Sequence record: MW373745.1 | DNA: 64,000 bases | Reading direction: 5' to 3' (one strand) | In this document: positions 3,405 through 44,839 of the stretch, piece by piece | How the letters are laid out: each line of letters begins with the position of its first letter | How positions within the stretch are numbered: the first letter of the stretch is position 1 | Made by a program: the position numbers and the translations under genes | Notes under the pieces: generated by a model | The model's database searches: none | What the model was told of the DNA's origin: nothing | What the model saw: the letters and a program-made list of their open reading frames with translations, nothing else

Positions 3405-4415
3405 ATGAATAAAATAGACTTCTCGGGTTCTGAATGTTCATATGAAAAACTACTAAATGGAACATTAGAGTTTGAAGGTATTCGAGCTGCGATAATGACA
3501 ACCGATAAATGTTGTTTTAGTTGTGAATATTGTTGTAATTCAGGTTTTACAGATTTTAATGCTGCTAAAAATACTAAAAGCGAAGCAGATTTAAAATGTT
3601 TTAATTTGGTTAAAGCTATATTTCCTAGATTAAAATCCGCAGTTTTATGTGGTGGTGAACCACTAATGTGTGATTATCTTTATGATTATTTAGACTTATT
3701 TAAGGATCTAAAAGACGTAACAATTTTAACAAATCTATTATATATAAAAGATCATTATAAACGTCTAAAAGAATATAGAAACCTAGATTTAGTTACAACT
3801 TATCACGCTTCTCAAATTAATTCTAATCAATATATTGAAAGACTTAAATATTTCTTAGACATAGATTTACCAAAAGAAGTTAAATTATTTTTTAACCATA
3901 AAAAACCAGATTTAATAGAAAGAACTCAAAATGTTAAAGATTTCTTAGAATCTCAAGGATTTACTAATATTATTTGTACTCATATTTCAGGATTTGGTTT
4001 TAGTAATCCAAATAAAAATGTAGCAGGCGTTGACCTTAATGCAGATAGAGACTACGTAATGATTTCTCAAGGAACTAAGAAATATATGAATGAATCTGAG
4101 TTTGCGAGTCAAAATTATCTCGGTATGGTCTGCAATGGTTTGAGACTTCACGTTTACCCAGATAGAATCATTGAAAATTGTTCAAGAAAAACTTTGACTG
4201 TAGAAGAAGTTCTAAAGTTAAAAGATTATCAAGTTTGTAAATTCAAAAGTTGTAATGTTGGTATGTGTTTGAATTATTTTAATAAATACAATGTTAAATA
4301 CTTAAAGAATATCAATTTTAATTGTATAACACCTCAAATTGATTATGATGAAGAAACAATAAAAATATTAGATTGTTTGAATTTTTACGGAGTAGAAGAC
4401 TATGAAAAATATTGA
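3405..4415 (+). CDS. radical SAM protein
   Basis: CxxxCxxC (CCFSCEYC), GGEP motif, extra C-terminal cysteines. Confidence 0.9.
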   Translation: MNKIDFSGSECSYEKLLNGTLEFEGIRAAIMTTDKCCFSCEYCCNSGFTDFNAAKNTKSEADLKCFNLVKAIFPRLKSAVLCGGEPLMCDYLYDYLDLFKDLKDVTILTNLLYIKDHYKRLKEYRNLDLVTTYHASQINSNQYIERLKYFLDIDLPKEVKLFFNHKKPDLIERTQNVKDFLESQGFTNIICTHISGFGFSNPNKNVAGVDLNADRDYVMISQGTKKYMNESEFASQNYLGMVCNGLRLHVYPDRIIENCSRKTLTVEEVLKLKDYQVCKFKSCNVGMCLNYFNKYNVKYLKNINFNCITPQIDYDEETIKILDCLNFYGVEDYEKY

Positions 4416-6809: not shown

Positions 6810-7724
6810 TTAAGCTTCCGTAATTGCAAACTTATATAACATCGGAGTAGTTGCAGAATGTAAAGGGTGTATTGTATATGCATTTCTTGTAAATATACCT
6901 ACAGTTCTTTCACCTGATTTATAATTATAAGCAGTTGTTAAGTTCATACAATATGGGCTATAAATCAACGAATTAACACCCTTTTCTTTATGAGATTTTA
7001 AACCCACATAAGCATTATTATCATCAGGATTTGGATTTAAATAATATCTTGTATTATTAATCTTACCTAAGAAATAATCATTCGCTCTATTTTCATCTGT
7101 TGAGTCATCTATTCTTGAATAAGTAAAACTTAATGATAATATACCACCTACACCAGTTTGTGGAAGTATACAAAAACTATCGTATGTTCTAAAATTAGGT
7201 GAATTCATTTTAATAACTAAATCATTTACCTTTTTAGATATATGAAATAAGTTTGTTTCGGCATTTTGTTTAGAATCGTTGTTATCATCTAACGTAATAC
7301 CTTCTGATTCAACTGCATTTTCTTTAATAAGATTTATAATTTTTTCAGTTTCTTTGTGTGCTGCAGAAGACTTGACCCAGTTAATGAATAATTCTGGTGT
7401 TTGTTCATTTCCGGCTTTATTAAGATTACTTAAATTTAATAAATCTTCCCAAGCTTCCTGTGATATTTTGATAATAGATTTATTAGTATCAACATCAATT
7501 TGTTTTTTAATAATTTTAAATGTATCTTGAGTTTCTTGTCTTGCGAAAACATATCCAGATGGTTGCATCATAGGTTGAACTTCAGCAATGTGATGACCTA
7601 TAAACGATTTGATTTTATCTTTTAAGATATCACCTAACATAACTTGGTAAAAATCTGCATCTATACCTTCGCTAATTAAGTTTGTAGTCTCCTTAAGAGA
7701 ATTTTCTAATAATAGTTTATACAT
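6810..7724 (-). CDS. T4 gp23/gp24-like capsid (vertex) protein paralog
   Basis: EVQPMMQPSGYVFA resembles gp23 VQPM..PTG.VFA; C-terminal RTVGIFTRNAY; late-type AATAAATA upstream. Confidence 0.7.
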   Translation of the reverse strand: MYKLLLENSLKETTNLISEGIDADFYQVMLGDILKDKIKSFIGHHIAEVQPMMQPSGYVFARQETQDTFKIIKKQIDVDTNKSIIKISQEAWEDLLNLSNLNKAGNEQTPELFINWVKSSAAHKETEKIINLIKENAVESEGITLDDNNDSKQNAETNLFHISKKVNDLVIKMNSPNFRTYDSFCILPQTGVGGILSLSFTYSRIDDSTDENRANDYFLGKINNTRYYLNPNPDDNNAYVGLKSHKEKGVNSLIYSPYCMNLTTAYNYKSGERTVGIFTRNAYTIHPLHSATTPMLYKFAITEA

Positions 7725-8451: not shown

Positions 8452-8700
8452 ATGGATTCAAAAAGCTTTATTAAAAAACAAGTTCTAAAAATCTTAAAAG
8501 TAACTAATATAGAAGAAGAAATTCTTCATAAAATGTTCGTAGATGAAGGTGTTGATGCCGATTTCTTGATACAAGTTCTGAAAGATCTACATAAAGAATC
8601 TAAAATTAAAGTTCTAATTAAATCTGATAATTGCTTGTTTGAATGGGATTCTCACAAGCCTTATATTAAAGGTGTTTATTATATAACTAGTAAAATGTAA
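8452..8700 (+). CDS. hypothetical protein
   Basis: 82 aa, AAGGAG RBS. Confidence 0.75.
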   Translation: MDSKSFIKKQVLKILKVTNIEEEILHKMFVDEGVDADFLIQVLKDLHKESKIKVLIKSDNCLFEWDSHKPYIKGVYYITSKM

Positions 8701-8713
8701 ACAAAGGTTCTAA

Positions 8714-9406
8714 ATGACAATATATAGTTTTTCGAAAATAGATACATATAAAAAATGCCCAAAACAATATTATTATAGATATATTGAAAAGGTTCCAGAA
8801 ACTCAAAAGAACCCAGCATTAAAAAAAGGTTCTGATATACACGAAATACTTGAGTTTCATAACACTGAAAAATACAATGAAGTTCTTAATTCAAAAGATC
8901 CAGAAATACAAAATATTACATTAAGATTTATTGATTCTGAATTAGGAAAAGAAATACTATCCAGAAAATCTTTAAGAGAATATGAATTATTCTTAGATTC
9001 TAATTATGAACCTTGTAGCAAAGATACTGCTATTTTTGTAGGCTATATTGATAGAATTAATACGACTGAAAATGGATTAGAGCTTATAGATTATAAAACA
9101 GGTAAATATAAAGAACCATCTTATCAAGATTTTACACAATTAATTTTATATAGTTTATATATATTTAAAAGACTTAAACTAAATGAAATAAAAATAAGAT
9201 ATGTTTATGTTGAACATCTTTTAGAAAATACTTTAAGTTTGTCTCAAGATTCTGCAATTTATTGGCAAGATAATCTTAATAATCAAATAAAATCTATTGA
9301 AAATTCTATTGAATCTAATACTTGGAATAGCAAACCAAATAAATTATGTCCTTGGTGTCCTTATGCAGGATTATGTCCAGATTTTAAAGGTAAACCTAAA
9401 TGTTAA
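8714..9406 (+). CDS. Cas4-like / RecB-family PD-(D/E)xK exonuclease with Fe-S cysteines
   Basis: YKKCPK; GYIDR...IDYKTG; QLILY; C-terminal CPWCPYAGLC. Confidence 0.85.
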   Translation: MTIYSFSKIDTYKKCPKQYYYRYIEKVPETQKNPALKKGSDIHEILEFHNTEKYNEVLNSKDPEIQNITLRFIDSELGKEILSRKSLREYELFLDSNYEPCSKDTAIFVGYIDRINTTENGLELIDYKTGKYKEPSYQDFTQLILYSLYIFKRLKLNEIKIRYVYVEHLLENTLSLSQDSAIYWQDNLNNQIKSIENSIESNTWNSKPNKLCPWCPYAGLCPDFKGKPKC

Positions 9407-10818
9407 AAAATAATTTTAAAAAATTAAACGAATCATTTAGTTTAATATCTTTAACTGATGACCAAAAAGCTAAATTAATATTTAAGAAAGATATTCGTTA
9501 TAATATATGGGCTCAAATGAATCCAAAATTAGCTTATGAATACTTCTATAAAGATTTCAACAACCAACAAATTGTACCAAACGGTGTTTTAGAATACCTG
9601 GGTATAACAACTAAACCAGAAATTAATGAAAAATTAGATTCGCAATTGGAAATAATTATAAAACATTTAGAACCATTTCCAGTTTATGATTATCAAAAAC
9701 AAGCTATAAAAGATGCTATGCAATTTCATAAGTTATTCATTAGAGCAGCCACAGGTGCTGGTAAAAGCGTCATTATTGGATTAATTGCTAAGATTCTAAT
9801 ATTAAAAAAATTAAAAGGTTTGATACTCGTTCCCAACATTTCACTAACAAATCAATTTAATAATGATTTAATAAATTATAAATTGGATATAGAAACAAGA
9901 TTAATAGGTGGTGAAAATAATATTAAATCTTTTGATAAACCATTAACAATTAGTACTTGGCAATCTGTTAAAAACTTTAAAGAAGCCTTAAATGATTTAG
10001 ATTTTATTATTGTAGATGAAGCACATACAGCCAAAGCAGATCAAATATTTGATATTTGTAATAAGTGTATTAATGCTAAGTATAAGATAGGTTTGACAGG
10101 GACTATTCCAGATAATGAAATAGATGCTATGAGATTAATAAGTATTTTTGGTTTACCAAGAACATATATTACACCCAGAGGTTTAATAGATAGAGGTCTG
10201 GCTACAAATGCTATTATTAATATAATAGATCTTAAATATAAATTTAATTTTGAAGGTGAATATTCAAGCCAATTGAAACAATTAAAAGAATACGATCCAA
10301 GAAATAATTTAATTCAAAGAATAGGCGATACTGTAGTCAGCAAAGGTAACACTTTAGTATTATTTTCTCATACTGAACACGGTCTAACTTTATTTTATAA
10401 GTTCTTGAAATCCAGAGGATTAAACTACGATAAAAAGACTTATAAAGATTTGGCGTTTCAACAAAGAAATAATGTATTTTTTATTAACGGAATGATAGAA
10501 GGTTCGCAAAGGGAAACTATTAGACAATTAATAGATTCAGTAAACAATGCTATCGTAGTTGCTAATTATGCGACAACTTCAACCGGAGTAAATATTAAGA
10601 ATTTACATAATTTAGTGCTTGCTAGTCCACTCAAAAGTTATGTCACAATAACTCAAAGTATTGGTAGATTATTAAGACTTCACGATTCTAAAGATATTGT
10701 TAATATATATGATATTGCTGATCACAATGGTTTTTTTAAGAAACAAATAAATGCTAGAATAACAAAATCTTATGAACCTGAAGGTTATGAAATAAAAAGA
10801 TTTACTTACAATATATAA
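9400..10818 (+). CDS. uvsW: UvsW-like SF2 DNA helicase
   Basis: ATGAGKS, DEAH, GLTGT, QSIGRLLR; T4 UvsW-like size. Confidence 0.9.
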   Translation: MLKNNFKKLNESFSLISLTDDQKAKLIFKKDIRYNIWAQMNPKLAYEYFYKDFNNQQIVPNGVLEYLGITTKPEINEKLDSQLEIIIKHLEPFPVYDYQKQAIKDAMQFHKLFIRAATGAGKSVIIGLIAKILILKKLKGLILVPNISLTNQFNNDLINYKLDIETRLIGGENNIKSFDKPLTISTWQSVKNFKEALNDLDFIIVDEAHTAKADQIFDICNKCINAKYKIGLTGTIPDNEIDAMRLISIFGLPRTYITPRGLIDRGLATNAIINIIDLKYKFNFEGEYSSQLKQLKEYDPRNNLIQRIGDTVVSKGNTLVLFSHTEHGLTLFYKFLKSRGLNYDKKTYKDLAFQQRNNVFFINGMIEGSQRETIRQLIDSVNNAIVVANYATTSTGVNIKNLHNLVLASPLKSYVTITQSIGRLLRLHDSKDIVNIYDIADHNGFFKKQINARITKSYEPEGYEIKRFTYNI

Positions 10819-10912
10819 CCAACTAAACTATTATAAAATATTATATTTTAATTTTAAACTAAAGTTCTAAAATTTCAGCAAGAATTAAGTTCAAATATAT
10901 TATAATTCTACA

Positions 10913-11006
10913 TAGCTGTTTAAAAGGGGATTGATAGTCACGGTGACGGTAAATACAATAAGGGTATTGTAGACCTAAGAGCTTCCTAGCAGCTCAAACC
11001 TTTTTT
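10913..11006 (+). ncRNA. candidate structured small RNA (multi-branch)
   Basis: Promoter at 10883-10906; closing stem AAAAGG/CCTTTT encloses three hairpins; ends in a T tract. Confidence 0.4.
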
Positions 11007-11106
11007 ACGGCTTAGATTAATTTTAAACTTAGATCTAAACTTGCTGCTATAGTGTTAAATATGTACTTTAGGTTTAAACTTAGAATTAATTTTAAAAGGA
11101 GATACA

Positions 11107-11535
11107 ATGTTAATACAAGTTAACGAAAATACAACTGTTAAATTATCAGCAGTTTGTAATATTAATGTTTTGAAAGACAAACAAGTTTTCAATATGTGTT
11201 ATACTTTCACAGATAAAAAAGGAGCAATGAGTGGTTATTATTATGTAGATAATAGTAATATAAACTATCAAAATTCTAAATACTTCAAAGAAAAATTCAT
11301 AGCAGTTCGTGGTATTGATAGATTAATATATATTAACACAGATTTTGTAAGCTTTATTAAAAAAGATTACGCAAATTACCCAAAAGTGGTAATTGGTTTT
11401 AGTCATAGTGTATTAAGACACAATGTCGAATCTTTTGCATTTGCACCCGAATATATGTATATTAGAACCAAACCTGAAGATTTAGATTCTACTTATGAAC
11501 AAATCTTAGAAGCTATTACAAATATTTCAAAATAA
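11107..11535 (+). CDS. hypothetical protein
   Basis: 142 aa, AAGGAG RBS. Confidence 0.8.
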   Translation: MLIQVNENTTVKLSAVCNINVLKDKQVFNMCYTFTDKKGAMSGYYYVDNSNINYQNSKYFKEKFIAVRGIDRLIYINTDFVSFIKKDYANYPKVVIGFSHSVLRHNVESFAFAPEYMYIRTKPEDLDSTYEQILEAITNISK

Positions 11536-11545
11536 GGAGGTAAAA

Positions 11546-12277
11546 ATGAGAGATGAATTTGATGATTTGTTAGCAAGCTTGTCAATAGAACCTGTTAAGA
11601 AACCTGAAATAGAATATCAAGAACCATTAGTTGTTAAACCTGCAAGCAACATAGAAGTTAATGGAGTAAACGAGCAAAACGCAGATTTAAATGATTTTGG
11701 TGATGTTCTTAACAGCATCGAATCAGGTGTTAGTAATACCAGCAATAATAACGAAAATATGGTAGCTAGCTCAGATTCAGAAGCTTTTAAGGAATATATA
11801 GATCTCAGAAATATTAAAAATGAATCAGATATTGAAGTTCCTGATTTAGTGGATACAATGCATTTAGAAGAAGCGCCAAGTTTAATACCAGAAGCACCTA
11901 GTGAACATACAAATCAAACACAAGAATCAAAACCAAGTGGTTACGAAGTCCCAGATATCAAGGGAACTATCAAAAGGGTACCAGATGTTGACGATTCTGA
12001 AAATAATGTTTATAAATTAGAAACTGAATATATTGATATTATATTAAGTTATGAAGAAGAATTAAAAGATCTTAAACGTCGTTTTAAACTTAATACATTA
12101 GAATATCAAGCAAAAGGTGTTCAGACTAGGTTAGTTATTAAAGCAGTTAAACAAGCAGCCAAAGACGCTAAAAAAGAAGGTTATATTATTAAAGATGAAA
12201 ATAGAATCCAAGAAAGAATTAATAATGATTCTAATTTATTAGGAAGAATTTGTTCAATTATTAATTCATCAATCTAA
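11546..12277 (+). CDS. acidic low-complexity protein with C-terminal GapR/DsbA-like DNA-binding domain
   Basis: YIDIILSYEEELKDLK...YQAKGVQTRLVIKAVK resembles the DUF2312/GapR pattern. Confidence 0.5.
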   Translation: MRDEFDDLLASLSIEPVKKPEIEYQEPLVVKPASNIEVNGVNEQNADLNDFGDVLNSIESGVSNTSNNNENMVASSDSEAFKEYIDLRNIKNESDIEVPDLVDTMHLEEAPSLIPEAPSEHTNQTQESKPSGYEVPDIKGTIKRVPDVDDSENNVYKLETEYIDIILSYEEELKDLKRRFKLNTLEYQAKGVQTRLVIKAVKQAAKDAKKEGYIIKDENRIQERINNDSNLLGRICSIINSSI

Positions 12278-16937: not shown

Positions 16938-17363
16938 ATGCAATTAATAGATGGCTATTACACAGATTCTAATAACAATAAATGGGATTCTTCTATGTAT
17001 ACTGAAGAACAAGCGAAAGAAGCTTCTGAGTCTTTAGTAGTTTGTAAAGATTGTTTAAATTGTTTCAATTGTATTGATTGTTATAAATGTATTGATTGTA
17101 TTGATTGTTATAAATGCCGCGTTTCTAAAGATTGTATTGATTGTAAATCTTGTATTGATTGTATTGATTGTTATAAATGCCAAGGTTGCTTTAAATGCCA
17201 TAAATGCGTTTATTGTTTGGATTGTCACGAATGTGTGGATTGCAAGAGGTGTCGAGCTTCTATAGATTGTTTGAATTGCATTGAGTGTGCGAATACTTCG
17301 AATGAATCACATACTCGAAAATCACATACAGTATTAAAAATATATAAAATCTTAAATGCATAA
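16938..17363 (+). CDS. Cys-rich (Cxx)n repeat protein
   Basis: 26 Cys in strict 3-residue register over 84 aa. Confidence 0.8.
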   Translation: MQLIDGYYTDSNNNKWDSSMYTEEQAKEASESLVVCKDCLNCFNCIDCYKCIDCIDCYKCRVSKDCIDCKSCIDCIDCYKCQGCFKCHKCVYCLDCHECVDCKRCRASIDCLNCIECANTSNESHTRKSHTVLKIYKILNA

Positions 17364-18174: not shown

Positions 18175-19194
18175 GTGATGCATAGTGATGTTATCCAAAC
18201 TCTAAGTTCAGCAGGCGCTTACTTACCTAATGACACTATATGTCCTAGAGCAAAACTAGACACTGGCACATACTGCAACTATCGTTGTTATTTTTGCTAT
18301 TACCAAAATGAGTTAGATAAAAAGACACCATTTGAAGTCATTAAAAAAAGAATAGATACTTTGTATAGTATAGGTTGTAGAGATTTTGATTTAAGTGGAG
18401 GCGAATCTTCCATACACCCAGATTTCTTTAAAATCCTAGAATATATTAAATCTTTGAATCCAGATAATAAAATATCTTGTTTGACAAATGGATCTAAATT
18501 TCAGAATAAAGATTTTCTTAAAAAAGCAAAAGATCTTGGGTTATCTGAAATATTATTTTCATTACATAGTGTTAATGAAACTCACGATAAAATAACTGGG
18601 ATAAAAAATTCTTATAATTATATAATTAAAGCTATTCATAATGCAAAGGATCTTGATATTGTTGTTAGATTAAATTCAACTATTACTGATGTAAATTATA
18701 AATTAGTTGATACTGAATATTTCGAAGTTGTTGAAAAATTAGAACCACTTGAAATGAATTTTCTACCATTGAATTATTTTAGTCAGAATTCAAAATCAAA
18801 AGGTGTTAATTATTCTGAGATTTTAGAACCTATAAAAAGATTTGTAGATTCATCAAGTATACCTTTGATCAATGTCCGATATGTCCCGTTTTGTTATATG
18901 ACTGGGTATGAGAAATACGTTGTAGGATATTATCAGCACATCTATGATATTTACGATTGGAATATTGCTATGTATGAATACTTAGAACCTAATTTAGTAA
19001 ATTTAGCAAAACAAGCTGCATCTAATAGACAAAAAAGTTATAGGAAATGTGATGCTTGTAGAACTTGTAAGTATTTTTATATCTGTGATGGTATTGAGCC
19101 TCAAGTTCTTAAAGCAGGTTGTGAATTTAAACCTATTCAAGGTTCTAAAATAAAAGATGTTAATACATTTAGAAAATCATTCTTTAATTTTTAG
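18175..19194 (+). CDS. radical SAM protein with C-terminal Cys cluster
   Basis: CNYRCYFC, SGGE, TNG, C-terminal CDACRTCKYFYICDG. Confidence 0.9.
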   Translation: MMHSDVIQTLSSAGAYLPNDTICPRAKLDTGTYCNYRCYFCYYQNELDKKTPFEVIKKRIDTLYSIGCRDFDLSGGESSIHPDFFKILEYIKSLNPDNKISCLTNGSKFQNKDFLKKAKDLGLSEILFSLHSVNETHDKITGIKNSYNYIIKAIHNAKDLDIVVRLNSTITDVNYKLVDTEYFEVVEKLEPLEMNFLPLNYFSQNSKSKGVNYSEILEPIKRFVDSSSIPLINVRYVPFCYMTGYEKYVVGYYQHIYDIYDWNIAMYEYLEPNLVNLAKQAASNRQKSYRKCDACRTCKYFYICDGIEPQVLKAGCEFKPIQGSKIKDVNTFRKSFFNF

Positions 19195-27756: not shown

Positions 27757-27784
27757 TATTTATTTTAAGTAATCAAAATAAATA
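27757..27784. promoter_or_regulatory. divergent late-type promoters (AATAAATA on both strands)
   Basis: Minus 27757-27764, plus 27777-27784; each 17-22 nt before a structural gene. Confidence 0.55.
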
Positions 27785-27801: not shown

Positions 27802-30800
27802 ATGGACAGCACAGATAATTCTAAAGTTACAAGTATTGAAACAAATCAATATATAAAAAATCCAAAATATACTACAAAGGAAGCTATTGATAAATTTGTT
27901 CACCTATTGATCCTGGGTAGATACACTGAAAAAGATTTATCAGATGCTTTGAACTATTGCTTAATACGTAGTACAGAAAGTTTTGACAGCATAGATTCTA
28001 TAAAAAAAGCTATAGAAGAACTTAAGAAAGATTCAGAAGCTTTTAAAATATTCATAGATAATACAAATAAACTTTTAGATGCTATCCAAGATATTAATAA
28101 AGAACAAACTGCTGAAATTGATAAAATTAATGAATTCTTAAAAACAGCAGTAACTTTAGATACTGAACAGACTATTGTAGGAACTAAAACATTTAATAAG
28201 ATTTATGTTCCAAATCCTACAGAATCTAAACAAGCTGCTAACGCTCAGTATGTTATAGATTATGTTAAAGATCAATTAAGTAAAACTATTGGAGATTTAA
28301 ATAATTTAAAAACTGAATCTAAAGATTTAATTATTAATGCTATTAACGAAGTTCTTGACAATTTAAATGCTTATAAAGAAACTATAAATGAAACTGCTAT
28401 TAATCAAATGATTGATACTAAGTTAAATCCATTAATAGAAAGAATCACGACAATTGAATCTACTGCGGATTACACCAAAGAATTAGCAGAAGCTAATAAG
28501 CAAGCTATTGAAGATTTAAATACAAAAGTAGTTGATAATACTAGTGATATAACGGATATCAATAGAAGACTTGAAGAAGCTGTTTTCTATAGTAAAATTG
28601 ATGATACTCGCAAAACTATACAACTTAAAAATTATGATAGCATTTCCGGTGTTAGTACTACTGGTGAAGGTATCAATATTGCTATGGTTTCTAAATGGGA
28701 TAAAGTAGATTTAGGATCTACCCAAATTCCTATTAACTTAAATGGGTCAGAAACCAGACCAACTTATAACGATTCTAAAGAAATAGCTTTAATGGATGAT
28801 GTTAAGTTGAAAGCAGATGCTAGCAATGTTTATAATAAATCTGAAATTGATACTAAATTAGATACTAAAGCAGATTCAAATACAGTTTATAATAAAGAAG
28901 ATTCTGACGCTAGATTTGTTAGTTTAACTGAGAATCAAAACATTCAAGGCAATAAAGTTATAGAAGGTATTTGGGAATTTAATGGAATATTGTCTAAACC
29001 AAAACAATTAGCAACTACCGAATATGTGGTAAATTATGCTAAAACATATGCTAACCAAAAAGTCGGAGATTTGGCAAGTCTTAAAACAGAAGCTAAAGAT
29101 ACAGCAGTGTCTGCTATCAACGAATTATTTGATAAGATTGAATCTGGTAATACAGATGAGCCAGTTGATACTTATACAAAACAAGAAATAGATGCTAAAT
29201 TAGAAACTAAAGCAGATGTTGACAATGTTTATAATAAATCTGAAATTGATTCAAAACTTGATCTTAAAGCAGACGCTGGCAGTGTCTATAACAAATCAGA
29301 GATTGATCATAAATTTGAAAACATAACTATTGATGATATTAATTATGCGAAGTTAGGTGAGGAAAATACTTTTATTCAAGAACAAAACATAAAACAAGTA
29401 AATATAAGTGATGAACCTACACTAGATACCCATGTAATTACTTTAAAATATTTTAAAGATAATTCTAGTGGTGGTATTTCTCCAGCTGATTATGTAACCA
29501 AGACTGAATTTACAAGTGGTATTAATAACAAAGCTGATAAAAATCATACACACGTTGTAGCTGATATAACAGATTTAAATTTAGATAGACTTGCTACAAA
29601 AGAAGAAACATATACTAAACAAGAAATAGATAATAAAATAGATGCAATAGTACCACCTGAAATTGACTTAACTCATTATGCAAAGAAAGATGCAGCTAAT
29701 ATTTTTACAAAAGCTAATACTTTTACAGAAGCACCTTCGGTAGAAGTAGATGCAACACTAGATAATCACGTTATTAGAAAAAAACAATTTGACAATAGCA
29801 TAAAAGAAATAAATGATAAAGTTAAATCTGTTGTTGGTGATTTAAATTCATTAAATAATGAAGTTTCTAAAGATAATTTAGTTAATGCTATAAATAGTGT
29901 GGATGATAAGTTCAAAACAACGGCTAAAACTAATGAATCAAATACATTTACAGGGGATCAAACTTATTTAGACAATATTTTACTAGAATCTGTTCCTTCT
30001 GAAAGAAATCACGCAGTTAATTTGGGATATATTTTAGACAATCCTGGAGGTATAAAACTCCCTGATCATACAGCACTTACACAGAATTCTGTTACAGAAA
30101 TAACTTTTGGATATGCAAATCCAGTATCATATTCTGCACAAACATTAAAAAATGTATTCTTAAAAGACATTATAGGTAATGATTATAAAGCTATTATGGC
30201 AGATAATAAGTCTTTTACAGTAAGCCCTTCAGAAGAAACAGTTGTAATATTATCTAGAGTAGATTATTTAAACAATATAGATTTTAAGTTTGATATTACT
30301 AAAACTTCAGAGCAACTTAAAGAGTATGAGCTTAAAGAAGGTGAAGTAAGAGTTATATTATCTTATGATACTGTTTCTGTTTATAGTAACGGTTACGGAT
30401 ATGGAGCTATGTTTTCTAGAAACGCTAATAAAAAAGACGGAGATTTAATATATGATTATTATTTTGGAAGTCAAAATGATATAACAAATAATAGAAAAGT
30501 ATCTATAAAAATAGATAAACTTGGCATTAATACTCCGGATATTGTAAGTATATCTATGACCACAAATGGTTCAGAAAAACTTACAGTTAAAACTGATGAA
30601 CTAAATCCTATAGAAAACATTTATGATTCTGCAGATATGACTTATATTCATACTCCTGTAAGCAAAACTGTAGGAGATGTTCTGTATAGTAATATATCTC
30701 AAGCAATCAAATCAATACATTTATTAGAAAATAATATATGTTCTTTAAAGCCTGCAGATATGGAATTACAACTTGTAAGACTTAAAGAATTTAAACAAAC

Positions 30801-37596: not shown

Positions 37597-38046
37597 ATGA
37601 GAGCTCAGCTTTTTGAATTGCACCAAGAACTCAATATCAAGGATAATATAATCTTGTTACATTGTGATATGTTTCCTTATGCAGGAAAGAACATCATAAA
37701 TTTACGTATACAAGAACAAACTATGATTAATGTAGCAGCTGGTATTGCATATACTGGCAAACCAGTTATAATCTATGGAGTTCTTGGATTTGTTTTTCTT
37801 AAAGCTCTGGAGCAAATTAAGTTTAGTATATTAGATTTTAGTGCGAAATATGCTCCAATAATTATGTATAATGCTGGATATACTGGGTGTTATGAAATGT
37901 ATGGCAAAGGCCACATTTTCAAAGAAGAATTAGATCTTTGTAAAGTTTATAATATTGAATATTTCAAACCTAATAAAGAAAATTTTAAAGGTTTGATAAA
38001 AGATTGTTTAAAAACAAATGGTTTCAAATATATTTTGATATATTAA
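37597..38046 (+). CDS. transketolase-like pyrimidine-binding domain protein
   Basis: IQEQTMINVAAGIAYTGKPV, KALEQIK, GH...E. Confidence 0.75.
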   Translation: MRAQLFELHQELNIKDNIILLHCDMFPYAGKNIINLRIQEQTMINVAAGIAYTGKPVIIYGVLGFVFLKALEQIKFSILDFSAKYAPIIMYNAGYTGCYEMYGKGHIFKEELDLCKVYNIEYFKPNKENFKGLIKDCLKTNGFKYILIY

Positions 38047-38135: not shown

Positions 38136-38143
38136 AATAAATA
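38136..38143 (+). promoter_or_regulatory. late-type promoter AATAAATA
   Basis: 21 nt before ATG38165; the same octamer precedes known structural genes. Confidence 0.5.
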
Positions 38144-38164: not shown

Positions 38165-39769
38165 ATGAAAGAATTAGTAGCATCGTGGCTAGCACGCAGA
38201 TTTACAGATAATGACTTTAGAAGTGTTCTCAAAAATGTCGTTCTAAAAGATGGTATAGGTAAAGGCACCAAACGCCCAGATAATGCTACCAATTTTGTGA
38301 ATACAAAAACTGGTGAATTAATAGAACCTACTAAAATTCGTGAATTTATCAAAGCTATGAATGTGGAGGTTCAAACTCGCAATAATTTCTATAAAGGTAA
38401 TACCGATTATCAAAATGTTTCACAAGTTCCACAAAATGGTGTTTTGCAGGGTTCTGTAGTTTTAAGCACACCTTATACTGCTATGCAGGTTGTTTTAGAA
38501 TCATTTGTAGGTGATGGAATTATAAATTTTGGAACCGCAGTCCAAGCAGATTTTAATCAAGTTAAATTAAATCAAAAATCTTTATTTTTAGCACACGGTA
38601 ATTATTTTGCAAGATTAGAATTTACAGCAAGTGCGATTGCTAATATTTCTGGTGGTGTAAGATTAACTTATAATCAGTCTCAACTTTGGTATGATCAAGG
38701 TAGATCAGAAGTTAATATTAATTATGATGCTTTAACAAAAATATTAGCTCTTGAAGATTTTACTGACGTAGAAATTGGTATAGCAGATTTTAGTTCTAAG
38801 AAAATTAAATGGTTTAATAACGTTAAACTTAAAGCAAGTACATTAAAATTCACAGTTTCTCAAAATACAGAAAACGCTAATAAAACAGTTCAAAAACGTA
38901 TAGTTTCTGGGTATTTAGATTTTACAATTGATCAAACTATTGAAGATACAATATCTGAGAAATTAAAAGGTGCTTTGATCACAGCTGCTAGATTCAATAA
39001 ATTCAAACAATTATTAAATAAAGCTGAAGTTGCTTGTTTATGTGATTGTAATTATTGTACTTGTGATTGTAATTATTGTACTTGTGATTGTAATTATTGT
39101 ACTTGTAATTGCAATTATTGTACTTGTGATTGTAATTATTGTACTTGTGATTGTAATTATTGTACTTGTAATAATAATAAAGAATACACTGATAGGGTTA
39201 ATTATTGGCATGGTGTTGTTTGTACTTGTAATGCGAATATTACTTGCCAAACTCAAGGTCCTGGATATACACCAGTTTATGAAAACAAATATATGACTGA
39301 GTGTTCTTGCCAAGGGGATAGAAGTGTTCCGCAATACAACCAATACGGTCAAATATATGGTTATGCGTGTAGATGTAATGCTAACTGGATTAATTCTGTT
39401 AGACAACACGCTACCGTAACTCAAGTATGTTCTTGTAACGTTGATAAACAATGGACTAAAAATATTACAGGTAAACCAATTTGGGATAAAAAATCTACAG
39501 GTCAAATCGATAATATTGTCAACAACAATACTTCAAATTCACAAACAAGTACTACTGTAAGAGTTTGTGTTTGTGATACAAACGTCACAATAGCTGCACA
39601 ATGTGCTACAAATAGAACAATGGCTTATGTTGATGGGTCAACTGGAAGTCAAGGCGGTTACAGATGTGTTTGCGATATCAACACAAATAGACAAATTGCT
39701 TGTTCTGCTAATAGAGAATATAAATATGTCACTGACTATACTCAATTTCAAAACAAACAATACAATTAA
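38165..39769 (+). CDS. probable virion protein with Cys-rich C-terminus, (CDCNYCT)6 plus CxC repeats
   Basis: No Cys in the first ~290 aa, 35 Cys in the remainder. Confidence 0.85.
   Translation: MKELVASWLARRFTDNDFRSVLKNVVLKDGIGKGTKRPDNATNFVNTKTGELIEPTKIREFIKAMNVEVQTRNNFYKGNTDYQNVSQVPQNGVLQGSVVLSTPYTAMQVVLESFVGDGIINFGTAVQADFNQVKLNQKSLFLAHGNYFARLEFTASAIANISGGVRLTYNQSQLWYDQGRSEVNINYDALTKILALEDFTDVEIGIADFSSKKIKWFNNVKLKASTLKFTVSQNTENANKTVQKRIVSGYLDFTIDQTIEDTISEKLKGALITAARFNKFKQLLNKAEVACLCDCNYCTCDCNYCTCDCNYCTCNCNYCTCDCNYCTCDCNYCTCNNNKEYTDRVNYWHGVVCTCNANITCQTQGPGYTPVYENKYMTECSCQGDRSVPQYNQYGQIYGYACRCNANWINSVRQHATVTQVCSCNVDKQWTKNITGKPIWDKKSTGQIDNIVNNNTSNSQTSTTVRVCVCDTNVTIAAQCATNRTMAYVDGSTGSQGGYRCVCDINTNRQIACSANREYKYVTDYTQFQNKQYN
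39041..39166 (+). repeat. 21-bp tandem repeat x6 (TGTGATTGTAATTATTGTACT)
   Basis: Five identical units and one variant (unit 4, CNCNYCT). Confidence 0.95.
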
Positions 39770-40027
39770 AACTCAATTAACATATAATCAGCTTGAAGTT
39801 CTTAAAAAGAGCTTCAATGCTTTTTAAAAATTTAAGATCAGAGATTTAAAACTAAAGTTTAAATTTTAAAATATTAAAGCATTTTTATATAAAATTATAC
39901 AAATAGATATAATTTTATATCAAATATTATATATTCTGGACTTAAAAGTATATTAAACTAAATAAATATAGAAATTATTTTAGAATTTTCAAAAATTGAA
40001 AGTTTTGAAATTTAAATATAATAAAAC

Positions 40028-40062
40028 GAGAAATAAAGAAACTACCAATTTCTTTATTTCTC
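40028..40062 (+). other. perfect 14-bp hairpin upstream of tnpB
   Basis: GAGAAATAAAGAAA - 7 nt loop - TTTCTTTATTTCTC. Confidence 0.8.
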
Positions 40063-40084
40063 TAATTTTAAACATAGGATTGAT

Positions 40085-41503
40085 ATGTCTAAAACTAAAA
40101 GTATTTATAATGAAGAGATACAAAATATTATAACAATCAAGCTAGACTATAAGTCTTCTGATACAGAAAGAATACTTGATTGTATCAAAAACTACAACTC
40201 TCTTTTTAGATCAACATATTCATTTTATCAGCAAGTTCCTGACTTAAAACAAGCAGAAACAACAAGACTTCAATCTAGATTGAATAATATTTTTCTTGAT
40301 AAGTGGTTTTTTAACTCAGCTGTTTTTGATGTTAAAAGTTTTAAGAACAAGAAAAAGAAAGATGAAAAAGTTATATTTGGTGGTAAAAAGAATTTCTTTG
40401 ATAGATTAAAAGGAAAAATTTCAAGAGAAGAATACCAACTAAAAAGACTGCTTCCTCTATATAGTGTAGGTGAAGCATCTAAGAATGGAAATAGAAAATC
40501 CCAAATAGAAGATGAAAATACAATAATTTTTAAAGTCTCAAGAAAAGAACATATCACTCTAAAATTAAATGGAACTTCTAAGAGATATAGAGATTATTTG
40601 AATCAGCTGATTACTTTACAAATAAACAAATCTATACCGATAACCTACAAGCTAGATACCAAATATGTTTATATCAGCTTCGACTTGAATAAACTCAAAC
40701 ACAATTTAAAAGTACAAGATAAGATTAAAGACAGAGTATTTGGTATTGATCTAAATCCCAACTACATTGGATATTCAGTAGTAGATTGGAAAAACGATGG
40801 ATCTTATAAAATCATAAAAACGGGTTCTATTTCTTTAAAAGCTCTAAATGATTATGATGATTCTTTAAAAGGACAAGGGTATTCTGGACAAAGTAAAGAA
40901 AGAAAATACATTTCAAATAAAAGAAATCACGAAATCATACAAATAGTCCATCAGCTATCTAAGTTAGCAAATCATTTTGGGTGTGAGATTTTTAGCTTAG
41001 AATACCTTAATACGAAGCAAGGAGATAAAGAAAAAGGAACTAAGTTCAACAAACTCTGTAATAATCAGTGGTGTAGAAGTCTTTTAGTTTCACAAATAAA
41101 GAAAATGAATTGTCTATACAAGATTAGAACTCTAGAGGTTCAACCTCAATATAGTTCATTTATTGGAAATCTTGTATATAGAGTTCATCAGCTTCCTGAT
41201 TATGTTCTAGCAAGTATAGAAATAGGAAGAAGGGGATATGAATTCTACCATCAATATATCTTAAAAGATAAAAAGATGGAGAAGAATATCATCTTTGGAA
41301 ACTATGAAAAAGATAAAAATCTTTATTATCTATCATTGGAAGAAATCGGTATTAAAGAGTCTTTTAATAGTTTTATGGAGATGTATTCTTTTGTAAAAAA
41401 TTCTAAATTGAGATATAGAGTTTCTCTAGATGATATAGATTCATCTAGAGTTTTCAGGAAACTTTTTATAAAATCTTATACGGAATTTTATAATTTTTTA
41501 TAA
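40085..41503 (+). mobile_element. tnpB: IS200/IS605-type TnpB-like RuvC nuclease, no adjacent transposase
   Basis: RuvC I GIDLN, RuvC II SLEYL, YSSFIG in place of the Zn finger, RuvC III PDYVLASIEIGRRG. Confidence 0.8.
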
Positions 41504-41582
41504 GTTTTATATGAAGTTTATATCTTTTTAAGTCAAAATATATTATAATTATTTTATCAAAGCTGTATATAAAGGAGATATA

Positions 41583-42662
41583 ATGAATTATTTAGAACTT
41601 AAAAATATGGCGGAGAATTTAAAAGATTCTAATTATAGGTCAACAAAATTAAACGATTTTAAATTCTATACTTATATATTGTCAGATTATAAAAACTTCA
41701 AAGAAAATAATACTTTTTTCATAAGAGGTTTAATGATAGATTCTAAATCTATATTAAACAAAGATACTTTAGCACCTGGTATATCGATACCAATACCAAA
41801 ATTCTTTAATATTAATGAAAATGAAGATTGGATATTACCAGATTCTACAAATCTTGAAGATTTCACTATAGTGACAAAATACGATGGTTCTTTAATGATA
41901 CCTTATGAATATGATGGTATAAAATTTAGAACTAAAATGTCTATTGACAACGATCAAACTAAATTAGCTAATAAGTATATCAAAAATAATCCAGATATAT
42001 TAGATCTAATAAAAAATAATCCAGGTACCCAGTACTTTTTCGAGTTGATATCACCTTTAAATAGAATAGTGGTAGACTATAATAAAACTGAATTAAAATT
42101 AATAGCTGAATTAAATCTTAGAACATTAGAATTTAAAATTCACGAAACTAACGAGTTTAATTTTAAAGATTTAAATATTAGGACTCTAAAAGATCTTAAA
42201 GATTATATAAACACCATATCTAATTACGAAGGTGTTATATTGCAGCATAAAGTAACTAAAAAAGTCTACAAGTTAAAAACACAAGAATATTTAGACTTAC
42301 ATAATACTGTAACTAATTTAGATTTAAAAGTGATATACAAAATGATATTAGAAGAAACTATAGATGATGTGTTACCAAAATTATCGCCAGAAGCTGTGGC
42401 TTATGTTGATTCTGTATCTAATTCAGTAAAAGTTAAGTTAAATGAAATATTAGATTCTATAGATTCTAATTATATTAAAGCTAAAGATCTTGAAGCTCCA
42501 GCTTTATATATAAAAGATTTGAATATAGATCCTATAGCCAAAGATTGTTTATTTAAATTATGTAGAAATAAACTTAATTTAGACAACGTCTTAGATCAAG
42601 TTAAAAAATCTATGTTAAAATATAACAAATTGCGAGATATTAAGGTTTTTTTAAAGCTATAA
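41583..42662 (+). CDS. RNA ligase 1 (T4 RnlA-like)
   Basis: PKFFNINE, TKYDGSL, FELISP.NRIVVDY, EGVIL, KLK; promoter at 41526-41549. Confidence 0.88.
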   Translation: MNYLELKNMAENLKDSNYRSTKLNDFKFYTYILSDYKNFKENNTFFIRGLMIDSKSILNKDTLAPGISIPIPKFFNINENEDWILPDSTNLEDFTIVTKYDGSLMIPYEYDGIKFRTKMSIDNDQTKLANKYIKNNPDILDLIKNNPGTQYFFELISPLNRIVVDYNKTELKLIAELNLRTLEFKIHETNEFNFKDLNIRTLKDLKDYINTISNYEGVILQHKVTKKVYKLKTQEYLDLHNTVTNLDLKVIYKMILEETIDDVLPKLSPEAVAYVDSVSNSVKVKLNEILDSIDSNYIKAKDLEAPALYIKDLNIDPIAKDCLFKLCRNKLNLDNVLDQVKKSMLKYNKLRDIKVFLKL

Positions 42663-42716
42663 ATTATATAATATTAAAATCAAGTCTTAAATCAATCTTT
42701 AAAAGGTTTTTCTTAA

Positions 42717-42806
42717 ATGAATTCATTTATATATTATATTGCAGTTTACGGCGGGATAAGTGCGATTTTGAGTGTTTTTGCAGTATATATTTCTCATAAG
42801 TTTTAA
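42717..42806 (+). CDS. 29-aa hydrophobic peptide, not in ORF track
   Basis: MNSFIYYIAVYGGISAILSVFAVYISHKF*, AAGG upstream. Confidence 0.45.
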   Translation: MNSFIYYIAVYGGISAILSVFAVYISHKF

Positions 42807-42815
42807 AGGTATAAA

Positions 42816-43229
42816 ATGAACACAATTAAACTAACTTGGAATGATGTTCACCAAGCTTTGCATAATCTTACAAATGAAGTAGATCTTAAAAATTTTGATT
42901 GTATAATAACTCCCAATAGAGGCGGATTAATAATAACTAGTATGTTGCAATACACCCAGGGTGTTAAATTACCTGTTTATGTAATTAATAATTCTGATGT
43001 AATCAATATTCAAAATTATAAAAAAGTTTTATTTTTAGATGATATTAACGATACAAGTAAAACAATATTTAAAATCCAAAAAGTTTTCAATGGTCTCATA
43101 ACATTTAAAACATTATTTGAAAGATATAATAGTCCATTTAAAACTGAGACTATCAATATCATCTTGAATGATGTTTGGTTAATTTTTCCTTGGGATATTA
43201 ACCCAGAAGTTTTAAATCTAAGAAAGTGA
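42816..43229 (+). CDS. type I phosphoribosyltransferase (purine PRT-like)
   Basis: NRGGL, VLFLDDINDTSKT, WLIFPWD. Confidence 0.82.
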   Translation: MNTIKLTWNDVHQALHNLTNEVDLKNFDCIITPNRGGLIITSMLQYTQGVKLPVYVINNSDVINIQNYKKVLFLDDINDTSKTIFKIQKVFNGLITFKTLFERYNSPFKTETINIILNDVWLIFPWDINPEVLNLRK

Positions 43230-43238
43230 GTAATTAAT

Positions 43239-43580
43239 ATGCTAGTACCAAAAATAATCAGAAATTCAAAAGTTTATAGATTTATAAAAAATATCATTAA
43301 ATTCAGAAATGAATTAATAATTTGGAGACCTTATGAGCCAATATTTGATTTAAAATTGATTTATAAAATGCTTAAAATCAAAAGAGAATATTGGCTTGAT
43401 GATTGTGGTGGGGCAGCTTATGAAGGTATGGAAAAAGAATTAGATACTTTAAATAGACTCTTAAATGAGTTAGACTTAGTATTTAAATATTCATATGATG
43501 GTGATGGCCAAACTGCTATGATCCATTTTGACATTTTTATGGAAATATATAAGAAAAATGCTTTTAAATTTTGGTGTTGA
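43239..43580 (+). CDS. hypothetical protein
   Basis: 113-aa ORF. Confidence 0.7.
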   Translation: MLVPKIIRNSKVYRFIKNIIKFRNELIIWRPYEPIFDLKLIYKMLKIKREYWLDDCGGAAYEGMEKELDTLNRLLNELDLVFKYSYDGDGQTAMIHFDIFMEIYKKNAFKFWC

Positions 43581-43669
43581 TATGACAATGCGTGTTAGAA
43601 TCTAAAAATACTAAAATATTTAAATTGCATTTAATCATAAATACTATATAATATATCTAAAGGAGAATT

Positions 43670-44839
43670 ATGGAATATTTACCAAAATCTCAAGGACCTA
43701 AAAAACTTTATAATTTTGATATTAATATGACTCAAGCGTGTACACTAAGATGTACATACTGTATTCAAGATTTTAATAAACAAAAATTTGAAAAATTATC
43801 ACCAGAACTTACTAAAAAAATGATAGAAAAGTTTGATTTTCTATTGAATTCAGTAGAATTCAATAAACATTATGATGGTATTAGAATTTCATTCTGGGGT
43901 GGGGAACCCACAACTAACCTAGAAGGTGTTAAAGAGTTTGTAGAATACTATAGACACAACCCAAAAGTTTGTTTCTTTATGTATTCAAATGGTTATAAAT
44001 ACAACCACGTTTTTGATTACTTAGAAACATTTAAGTATATGCCAAATGTCGGGTCAGAACCAAAATTCTTGACTCAAATATCTTATGATGGAATGGCAAG
44101 TCACGATTCAGATAGACTTAATTTACAAGGTAAGGGCTCAGCACAACAAGTTAAAGAAACTGTTTTTGAACTAGCAAAAAGAAATATACCTTTTATTGTA
44201 CATCCTACGATTGCAGCTAAGAATTTCGATAAGATTGCTATTAATTATTTCGAATTTAAAAGAATGTCCGATGTCTTAGGTATTGAACTTAATTATAACC
44301 CTACGATAGACTATATGTCTAAATATGATTTTACAAAAGAACAATTAGAAGCATTGACAAATACTTTAAAAGAAGAATTCTTAAAAATACGTGATGCTGA
44401 AGTTGAGTTCTTTAAAAGAAAAGGATATTTTAATTTTGGTTGGATGAATCCAAATAGAAGTATTTGTACAGCAGGTGATGGCTATTCTGGTATTGAATTG
44501 GATGGTAAAATGTATGCTTGTCACGGTGTTTTTAGTGAAGAATATAAACCAAATAATGTTTTAAATGATATTAATTTTGAGAATGTAAAATTTACTGAAA
44601 CATTGATTAAGAGCTCACAAGATCATAGAAAAATATTAAATGAAAATATGCCCAAAGCTTGCCAAGAATGTTTTACACATTATTGTTTAAAATGTAATTC
44701 TACAAAATTTGGTATTTCTAATAAAGAAACCTACGCAGAAAGATGGACTGATTATAGTTGCCAACCTGGTTTATGTTATATGTTTAAATTCATAGGTAAA
44801 TATAGAATAGCTTTGATGAAATATATTCAAGCTTCTTAG
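43670..44839 (+). CDS. radical SAM protein with SPASM-like C-terminal domain
   Basis: CTLRCTYC, WGGEP, SYDG; CTAG..DGKMYACH..CQEC...CLKC...C. Confidence 0.92.
   Translation: MEYLPKSQGPKKLYNFDINMTQACTLRCTYCIQDFNKQKFEKLSPELTKKMIEKFDFLLNSVEFNKHYDGIRISFWGGEPTTNLEGVKEFVEYYRHNPKVCFFMYSNGYKYNHVFDYLETFKYMPNVGSEPKFLTQISYDGMASHDSDRLNLQGKGSAQQVKETVFELAKRNIPFIVHPTIAAKNFDKIAINYFEFKRMSDVLGIELNYNPTIDYMSKYDFTKEQLEALTNTLKEEFLKIRDAEVEFFKRKGYFNFGWMNPNRSICTAGDGYSGIELDGKMYACHGVFSEEYKPNNVLNDINFENVKFTETLIKSSQDHRKILNENMPKACQECFTHYCLKCNSTKFGISNKETYAERWTDYSCQPGLCYMFKFIGKYRIALMKYIQAS

Follow-up and report, generated by a model that had tools for sequence, protein, structure and literature searches.

Radical S-adenosylmethionine (SAM) enzymes with a SPASM domain modify Cys-rich peptides and a few enzymes. 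One of them, QhpD, forms Cys-to-Asp/Glu thioethers within a protein subunit. To our knowledge, no radical SAM/SPASM enzyme matures a protein of a virus particle. Here we analyze a 64,000-nucleotide stretch of sequence record MW373745.1 (hereafter the window), a sequence that matches Campylobacter phage CJLB-13 (genus Firehammervirus) with 100% identity. The window encodes a 534-residue protein with 35 Cys and, starting 3.9 kb past the stop codon of its gene, a radical SAM/SPASM enzyme. The region containing the two genes is 93-99.7% identical to that of other Firehammervirus (group II) phages. The Cys repeat of the 534-residue protein is found in many otherwise unrelated proteins, and its genes are linked to radical SAM genes, including those of the enzyme's own family. 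This combination suggests that phages modify a fibre protein chemically with a dedicated enzyme. Radical SAM genes have puzzled phage genomics since 2010, and earlier papers only note their abundance (PMC2853527; PMC5332604). Literature searches, including searches with the motif letters, found no published description of the repeat/enzyme pairing.

A portable Cys-repeat module

A first-pass annotation, made from the letters of the window, had described the protein as having 35 Cys and none in its first ~290 residues. The first Cys is indeed residue 291. The short helical segment that it placed before the repeats corresponds to a helix at residues 274-289, directly ahead of the repeats, in an AlphaFold2 (AF2) model. 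Its array of six CDCNYCT units was nearly exact: six heptads occupy residues 293-334, but one of them reads CNCNYCT. The DNA behind the heptads is a 21-bp tandem repeat (39041-39169, 6.1 copies, 96% match), and Timms et al. reported the heptad repeat as the sole intragenic repeat of CP220 and CPt10 (PMC2853527). The six further CxC units, also seen in the first reading, lie within residues 353-513. They start at residues 353, 380, 402, 422, 468 and 501, and all six fit C-x-C-[N/D/Q]-x-[N/D]. The heptad copy number ranges from 1 to 6 among orthologues; the dispersed units are retained, even in orthologues with identity as low as 35%. The 534-residue protein has no match in Pfam or NCBIfam.

A HMMER scan of 1.84 billion representatives with the Cys-repeat protein as the query (E up to 0.001) found the module in at least 225 protein clusters (at 50% identity) with unrelated N-terminal domains. 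The matches are nearly all confined to query residues ~265-338. A word-indexed search returned full-length relatives of the 534-residue protein with identities down to 21-40%, as well as many unrelated proteins with the same repeat, some of which bear Peptidase_S74 or Hint domains. When the window's family was compared with 25 short module proteins by hhalign, the alignment covered only 66 columns, the helix plus the repeats, with a probability of 100%; the N-termini of the other module-bearing proteins have no homology to the N-terminal domain of the 534-residue protein. A likeness of N-terminal motifs among module proteins, noticed by eye, was dropped, as the hhalign homology covers the helix and the repeats only.

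The repeat takes the form of tandem hexads (two Cys per unit), heptads or octads (three Cys per unit), with additional dispersed copies in the 534-residue protein, and its number varies from 1 to 25 across module proteins. In runs of at least two strict C.C..C. heptads, position 4 is Asn in 90%, position 5 is Tyr in 88% and position 7 is Thr in 77%. The 20 residues ahead of the first Cys have an a/d-like hydrophobic pattern: in 240 distinct segments, positions -19, -14, -11, -7 and -4 of the pre-repeat helix are hydrophobic in 78-96%, and Asn occurs at positions -13 and -6.

A further context of the module is seen in two metagenome proteins, P0035 and P0039, where the Cys heptad array is joined directly to an intein-like Hint domain (PF13403 in P0039). 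In locus L125, from a Campylobacter concisus genome, the heptad-coding DNA pattern (2383-2421) sits in a spacer of a clustered regularly interspaced short palindromic repeats (CRISPR) array with 26 repeat copies. Locus L127, also from a C. concisus genome, has a match to the pattern at 7086-7124. The spacer in L125 suggests that hosts target the heptad repeat in related phages via CRISPR. Combined with the variable heptad number among close orthologues, the C. concisus spacers indicate that the module is under active host-phage selection.

Linkage of the module to the enzyme family

Co-occurrence of (CxCxxCx)n proteins with the family of the enzyme had been named beforehand as a check of the proposal that the two genes work together. 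The outcome was strongly positive, in both directions and in three collections. For the search from repeat to enzyme, a DNA pattern back-translated from two heptads retrieved 41 IMG/VR loci, at least 120 metagenome loci and 5 genome loci, which were scored with a hidden Markov model of the enzyme family. A family enzyme (at least 284 bits) was present in 17 of the 38 non-Campylobacter repeat loci from IMG/VR and any radical SAM gene in 30; the eight loci without one were short or had the Cys gene at the locus end. For 116 metagenome loci among the matches listed, the share with a radical SAM gene rose with the visible flank, from 9/36 below 2 kb through 21/29 at 2-5 kb and 20/22 at 5-9 kb to 28/29 from 9 kb upwards. 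The enzyme's own family was found in 21 of the 29 loci in the last group, again among the matches listed. Where both genes were present (108 loci among the matches listed), the nearest radical SAM gene was a median of 375 nt away from the repeat gene and within 1 kb in 89; the two genes shared a strand in 107, and the radical SAM gene was the upstream one in 85.

In the reverse search, from enzyme to repeat, an open reading frame (ORF) of at least 120 residues with at least 8 Cys begins no more than 150 nt downstream of the enzyme gene in 41 of ~43 non-Campylobacter IMG/VR loci. Of these 41 ORFs, 34 contain three or more CxC[N/D] units, and in 20 the beginning of an S74 domain is present. As a background, just 33 of 50,697 phage records contain an enzyme match, 15 of them Firehammervirus, and both genes are matched solely in Firehammervirus records.

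The pairing is found in different arrangements. P0011, which is 35% identical to the 534-residue protein over its full length, and P0016 have a family enzyme 18-45 nt upstream. P0217, the closest relative of the enzyme (61% identical), has a 450-residue six-heptad orthologue of the Cys-repeat protein 0.9 kb downstream. As the pairing is kept in these three with an altered layout, the linkage survives rearrangement. Its contexts extend from T4-like contigs through to an SU10-type contig: independently chosen S74-type proteins lie within clusters of 5-10 radical SAM genes in 20-kb loci, and one of them shares its contig with a capsid gene of the SU10 type and an Mtd_N fibre gene. Clustering of the linked enzymes gives 32 groups at 50% identity and 18 at 40%, and the linkage persists at 25-35% enzyme identity. 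In addition, the enzyme subclade tracks the repeat type, with the enzymes nearest to that of the window accompanying aromatic heptads or octads and more distant ones accompanying hexads.

Since the hhalign homology is limited to the helix and the repeats, the linkage follows the module rather than the whole gene. Many of the loci come from related T4-like environmental phages that share a wider gene repertoire, and the two genes might hitch-hike in a mobile accessory island shared by descent, with no functional link. Such hitch-hiking seems to us extremely improbable, because the linkage holds at the low enzyme identities mentioned above, in inverted gene order and in the SU10-type context, and because what it accompanies is a 66-column module whose host proteins are otherwise non-homologous. 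That the linkage stays with the module in unrelated proteins, after rearrangement and across deep divergence speaks for a functional tie.

Loci L049-L091 show a recurrent gene order at ~8500-12000 of each locus: a radical SAM gene (radical SAM A, ~310-370 residues), a small Cys-poor ORF of 72-126 residues, the family enzyme and the Cys-repeat protein. The small ORFs have no Pfam assignment, and 18 of them form one family. A search of the window found no radical SAM A, and the small ORF likewise has no counterpart there.

A probable fibre-type protein of the virion

The first-pass annotation also took the 534-residue protein for a structural protein of the virion, a view that is upheld by published proteomics and by the domain context of its relatives. 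Gene 3-9 of IBB_35 (1605 nt, 60,318 Da) is among 38 particle proteins identified by electrospray ionization tandem mass spectrometry, with a coverage of 2.6% (PMC3322345 Table S2). It is a 93%-identical orthologue of the 534-residue protein; the identity of the gene is backed by synteny and by a recomputed mass of 60,317 Da. Detection in virions is through this orthologue only. In module-bearing relatives, Peptidase_S74, a fibre-folding chaperone, is located directly C-terminal of the Cys repeat (PF13884, 24-32 bits against a cutoff of 22). The 534-residue protein itself has no S74 domain in Pfam, and when the S74-type partners were searched against cultured phages, the generic S74 domain alone matched. 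The best explanation is that the 534-residue protein is a fibre-type structural protein of the virion.

The very high Cys density of the protein and the co-occurrence of up to ten Fe-S enzymes could also mean that the enzymes are helped by the Cys-repeat protein, for example through a store of Fe-S or sulfur or a scaffold for radical SAM proteins. Fe-S assembly genes are likewise present in marine T4-like genomes with abundant radical SAM genes (PMC5332604). We regard this role as very improbable. The orthologue is found in virions and the S74 fibre-folding domain comes straight after the repeat in relatives; the repeat number, from 1 to 25, is spacer-like, and it is not obvious how the invariant Asn would take part in binding a cluster.

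Structure prediction provided limited insights into the repeat. In the AF2 model of the 534-residue protein, the predicted local distance difference test score (pLDDT) is 55-85 over ~residues 40-290 and 22-35 in the Cys half, with a mean of 47 for the protein. A Foldseek search of this model against the PDB returned nothing below E 0.02 and thus no significant fold match. In the AF2 model of the short module protein P0085, the repeat forms short beta strands with a period of ~7 (pLDDT 55-66). Foldseek matches of this model were non-significant, of beta-helix and antifreeze type only, and are treated as no more than a hint.

The beta-repeat model was obtained without any crosslink. It would suit a metal-bound or disulfide-bonded stalk that is not modified enzymatically, with the CxC units arranged along the axis of a trimeric fibre and the radical SAM enzymes acting elsewhere. 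The CxC spacing puts both thiols on the same face of a beta strand, the dispersed units, 20-45 residues apart, recall the HxH layout of gp37 and gpV, and S74 chaperones alone are enough to fold other fibre stalks. A stalk of this kind has, in our view, a real but minor chance of being the correct explanation. It does not account for the near-universal same-strand, sub-kilobase linkage to one enzyme family, which extends over 18-32 deep enzyme clusters and unrelated protein contexts, and no resemblance to HxH fibres in sequence or fold emerged from Pfam or from the Foldseek search of the PDB.

The radical SAM/SPASM enzyme

The first-pass annotation had assigned the gene 3.9 kb downstream to a SPASM-type radical SAM enzyme, and the assignment is correct. 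PF04055 matches the enzyme at 39.5 bits (cutoff 29.5), as expected for a radical SAM core. In an alignment with 13 relatives, the CX3CX2C cysteines C24, C28 and C31 are invariant. Seven SPASM cysteines (C266, C284, C331, C334, C339, C342 and C369) are likewise invariant in the 14 family members, with the spacing of the motif: C266-X12-G279-X4-C284, followed by C331/C334/C339/C342 and then C369. The Pfam SPASM model scores 17.1 against a cutoff of 21.5 and is below threshold. By comparison with CteB, the seven post-core cysteines presumably leave an auxiliary-cluster site open for a substrate Cys.

Among NCBIfam models, PapB scores best (77.6 bits, cutoff 340), followed by anSME and ScfB-like models; anSME scores 60 bits, aligned end to end, and QhpD 44 bits. 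Searched against solved structures, the profile of the enzyme family matched CteB first (5wgg, 1e-19), then 8vpo, then anSME. In the CP21 record (L002), the radical SAM and RnlA orthologues each have one break and are annotated as two coding sequences (CDSs); in the window the two genes are uninterrupted.

In loci L120, L121 and L123, 8-10 radical SAM genes within 20 kb surround an S74-type Cys-heptad protein and are interleaved with GT2 glycosyltransferase, UDP-glucose dehydrogenase-like, epimerase and transketolase-like genes. The mixture in L120 and L123, together with the epimerase and PIG-L/LmbE-type genes present in the window and its relatives, would fit a different role for the radical SAM clusters: they could make another group, sugar- or cofactor-derived, for which the Cys or Asn of the repeat is the attachment site, with the enzyme's family making the group. 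We consider this improbable, since the family enzyme is a SPASM protein nearest to modifiers of peptides and proteins, directly abuts the Cys-protein gene in many loci, and is the only such enzyme that Firehammervirus retains nearby.

A proposed role for the enzyme

The enzyme class, together with the S74 and virion context, makes a maturase of the fibre stalk the best reading of the locus. We regard it as modestly probable that the enzyme is the dedicated maturase of a fibre-stalk Cys module. The N-terminal domain of the 534-residue protein is its lineage-specific part. The C-terminal half is built from the portable module, which occurs widely and has a short coiled-coil-like helix ahead of its C-x-C-N units. 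This module most probably makes up the axial stalk of a trimer, probably with a trimeric beta-type architecture. The radical SAM/SPASM enzyme may act on the Cys units before or during assembly. Judging from the nearest characterized enzymes, it would most probably install thioether-type crosslinks from the Cys sulfur to a neighbouring residue, for which the invariant Asn/Asp would be the obvious acceptor. The outcome would be a covalently stapled, very stable stalk. It is possible, and more tentative than the role of this one enzyme, that many phage lineages build fibres with CxCN-repeat stalks that are stapled covalently by dedicated radical SAM/SPASM enzymes, in a protein-scale RiPP-like pathway (RiPP, ribosomally made, post-translationally modified peptide).

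The first-pass annotation had gone further and called the protein a RiPP precursor fused to a virion domain. A conserved helix does precede the repeats, but the partner proteins are 150-830 residues long and the RiPP recognition element (RRE) is missing, so the term fits only loosely. A RiPP precursor is short, with a removable leader, and is encoded beside its maturase; here the helix is internal to a large protein, and there is no sign of a protease.

Several observations weigh against the enzyme being a maturase of the stalk. First, it falls far short of the cutoff of every curated maturase family (PapB, 77.6 against 340; SCIFF maturase, 47.2 against 425). It has no fused RRE domain, as its alignments start at its residue ~11-18 but at ~residue 100 of the CteB and ScfB models. 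No stand-alone RRE is recognizable near the enzyme either: the 113-residue neighbour has no family match, and the small ORFs of the relatives have no Pfam match. Second, the pairing is not uniform. In Firehammervirus, 2.3-3.9 kb and unrelated genes separate the Cys-protein gene from the enzyme gene. Two full-length relatives of the 534-residue protein deviate as well: a different radical SAM gene is adjacent to P0028, and P0013 has no radical SAM gene in the 3.5 kb visible upstream. The relatives usually hold two to ten radical SAM genes, which leaves the assignment of the enzyme ambiguous, and the linkage could in part reflect descent of a mobile two-gene cassette. Third, the structures predicted for the Cys region have low confidence and no significant fold match, and the coverage of the IBB_35 orthologue in mass spectrometry is just 2.6%.

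Neighbouring genes and other features

The features of the locus are listed in Table 1. Between the Cys-protein and enzyme genes, the first-pass annotation had noted a TnpB insertion. The insertion is real in comparison with CP21 and CP220, but its identity as TnpB depends on one sub-threshold match. Among 15 relatives, only CJLB-13 and F379 have the 472-residue ORF at 40085-41503, and F379 annotates two 'putative endonuclease' CDSs there. Its sole family match is TIGR01766 (E 0.0018, 18.7 bits, cutoff 32), with no match in Pfam, PHROG or the PDB. The 113-residue ORF that precedes the enzyme gene does not match the small ORFs preceding the enzyme in other phages, even at E 10.

The first-pass annotation had noted the octamer AATAAATA before the Cys-protein gene and before gp14, the tail fibre, the gp23/24 paralog and the hub gene. 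It is found at 27777, 38136 and 44914, 25-29 nt before the starts at 27802, 38165 and 44942 of three large genes (1756, 534 and 1187 residues, respectively) and in a shared A-rich context, but the window has 15 sites where 33 are expected. The octamer is thus rarer than chance rather than enriched, and the argument from it is weak. In its A-rich context, a late-type promoter is a possible role for it.

The window also contains two more radical SAM genes, as first reported. An ORF at 16938-17363 (+) encodes 141 residues with 26 Cys, one at every third residue (phrog_15341, function unknown). It is located 0.8 kb upstream of the radical SAM gene at 18175-19194 (+), with a metallophosphatase gene between them, and the two may represent a second Cys-substrate/enzyme pair. 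No convincing relatives of this ORF were found among the fetched loci. Just upstream of the Cys-protein gene, a 149-residue ORF (37597-38046) has a weak match to a transketolase pyrimidine-binding domain. Transketolase-like ORFs also flank the distant radical SAM/Cys-protein cluster in L123 (20059-20903).

Table 1. Coordinates of features in the window
Feature	Position	Strand	Basis or remark
534-residue Cys-repeat virion protein gene (~60.1 kDa)	38165..39769	+	ORF; phrog_26958, function unknown
Cys-free N-terminal domain, ~residues 1-264	38165..38956	+	AF2: mixed helix and beta-sandwich
Amphipathic helix leading into the repeats, residues 265-290, part of the conserved module	38957..39034	+	phmmer/hhalign matches always begin here
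Heptad Cys array, residues 291-335, six C-[D/N]-C-N-Y-C-T units	39035..39169	+	21-bp tandem repeat
C-terminal region, six dispersed C-x-C-[N/D/Q]-x-[N/D] units, residues 353-513	39221..39703	+	sequence; orthologue conservation
Terminator-like hairpin directly 3' of the Cys-protein gene	39793..39817	+	consensus scan only
Radical SAM/SPASM enzyme, 389 residues, proposed maturase	43670..44839	+	PF04055, PF13353; genomic linkage to Cys-repeat genes
Inserted 472-residue ORF, weakly TnpB-like	40085..41503	+	in CJLB-13 and F379; absent from CP21, CP220, CPt10 and others
RnlA-type RNA ligase ('tail fibre attachment catalyst' family)	41583..42662	+	PF09511; phrog_562
Phosphoribosyltransferase-like 137-residue protein	42816..43229	+	family match
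113-residue ORF directly upstream of the radical SAM gene	43239..43580	+	phrog_25482
Third radical SAM gene	3405-4415		best match weak: anaerobic ribonucleotide reductase activase-type models
Second radical SAM gene	18175-19194	+	0.8 kb downstream of the ORF with 26 Cys
AATAAATA octamer, 29 nt upstream of the Cys-protein start	38136..38143	+	possible late-type promoter element

Comparison with known systems

If the enzyme and its substrate are as proposed, enzyme-installed crosslinks would join the known means of virion stabilization, and radical SAM genes would acquire a concrete role. The more tentative reading of stapled stalks in many phage lineages would also account for up to a dozen such genes in Campylobacter group II phages and in marine or freshwater T4-like phages. 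The chemistry of the enzyme would also gain a large substrate family, of at least 225 clusters at 50% identity. Since Firehammervirus alone matched both genes among the 50,697 phage records, the window points to an experimental system, and Firehammervirus would be the sole cultured model for a stapled-stalk pathway.

The closest described enzymes are those of the CteB/SCIFF and PapB/freyrasin systems, which form thioethers in Cys-rich peptides. They share with the enzyme of the window a radical SAM core and SPASM domain, and provide its best match among structures (5wgg, 1e-19) and among curated models (PapB, 77.6 bits). The candidate substrate is also comparable, with repeated Cys motifs and nearby Asp/Asn, and its gene is adjacent and co-oriented. 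Unlike these systems, the enzyme is far under the equivalog cutoffs and has no N-terminal RRE. Its partner is a structural protein of 150-830 residues rather than a peptide of less than 100 residues, with no leader protease or exporter. QhpD, with QhpC, and anSME are similar in another respect: they are SPASM enzymes without an RRE that act on a whole protein, as would the enzyme in our proposal. The low scores of their models (44 and 60 bits), their unrelated substrates and the viral structural context set the enzyme apart from them.

On the side of the substrate, the Cys repeat of the relatives occupies the trimeric-stalk position of S74 fibres and spikes such as endosialidase and T5 pb1, immediately N-terminal to S74; the window protein itself differs from these in having no S74 domain. 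We know of no S74 stalk that consists of CxCN repeats or has a radical SAM enzyme as its partner. In T4 gp37 and in the P2 and phi92 spike tips, iron is bound by HxH motifs. The tip of T4 gp37 and the P2 gpV and phi92 gp138 spikes resemble the 534-residue protein in having an i, i+2 ligand pair repeated along the fibre axis, which in the window protein corresponds to the dispersed units in the last 180 residues. They differ in that Cys replaces His, so that the HxH motif itself is absent, in the lack of sequence or fold similarity, and in having no dedicated enzyme. In the HK97 capsid, autocatalytic isopeptide bonds crosslink the capsid proteins, whereas in the window the proposed agent is an enzyme and its target a fibre-type protein. 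If our proposal holds, the two systems would have in common that a virion protein is covalently reinforced.

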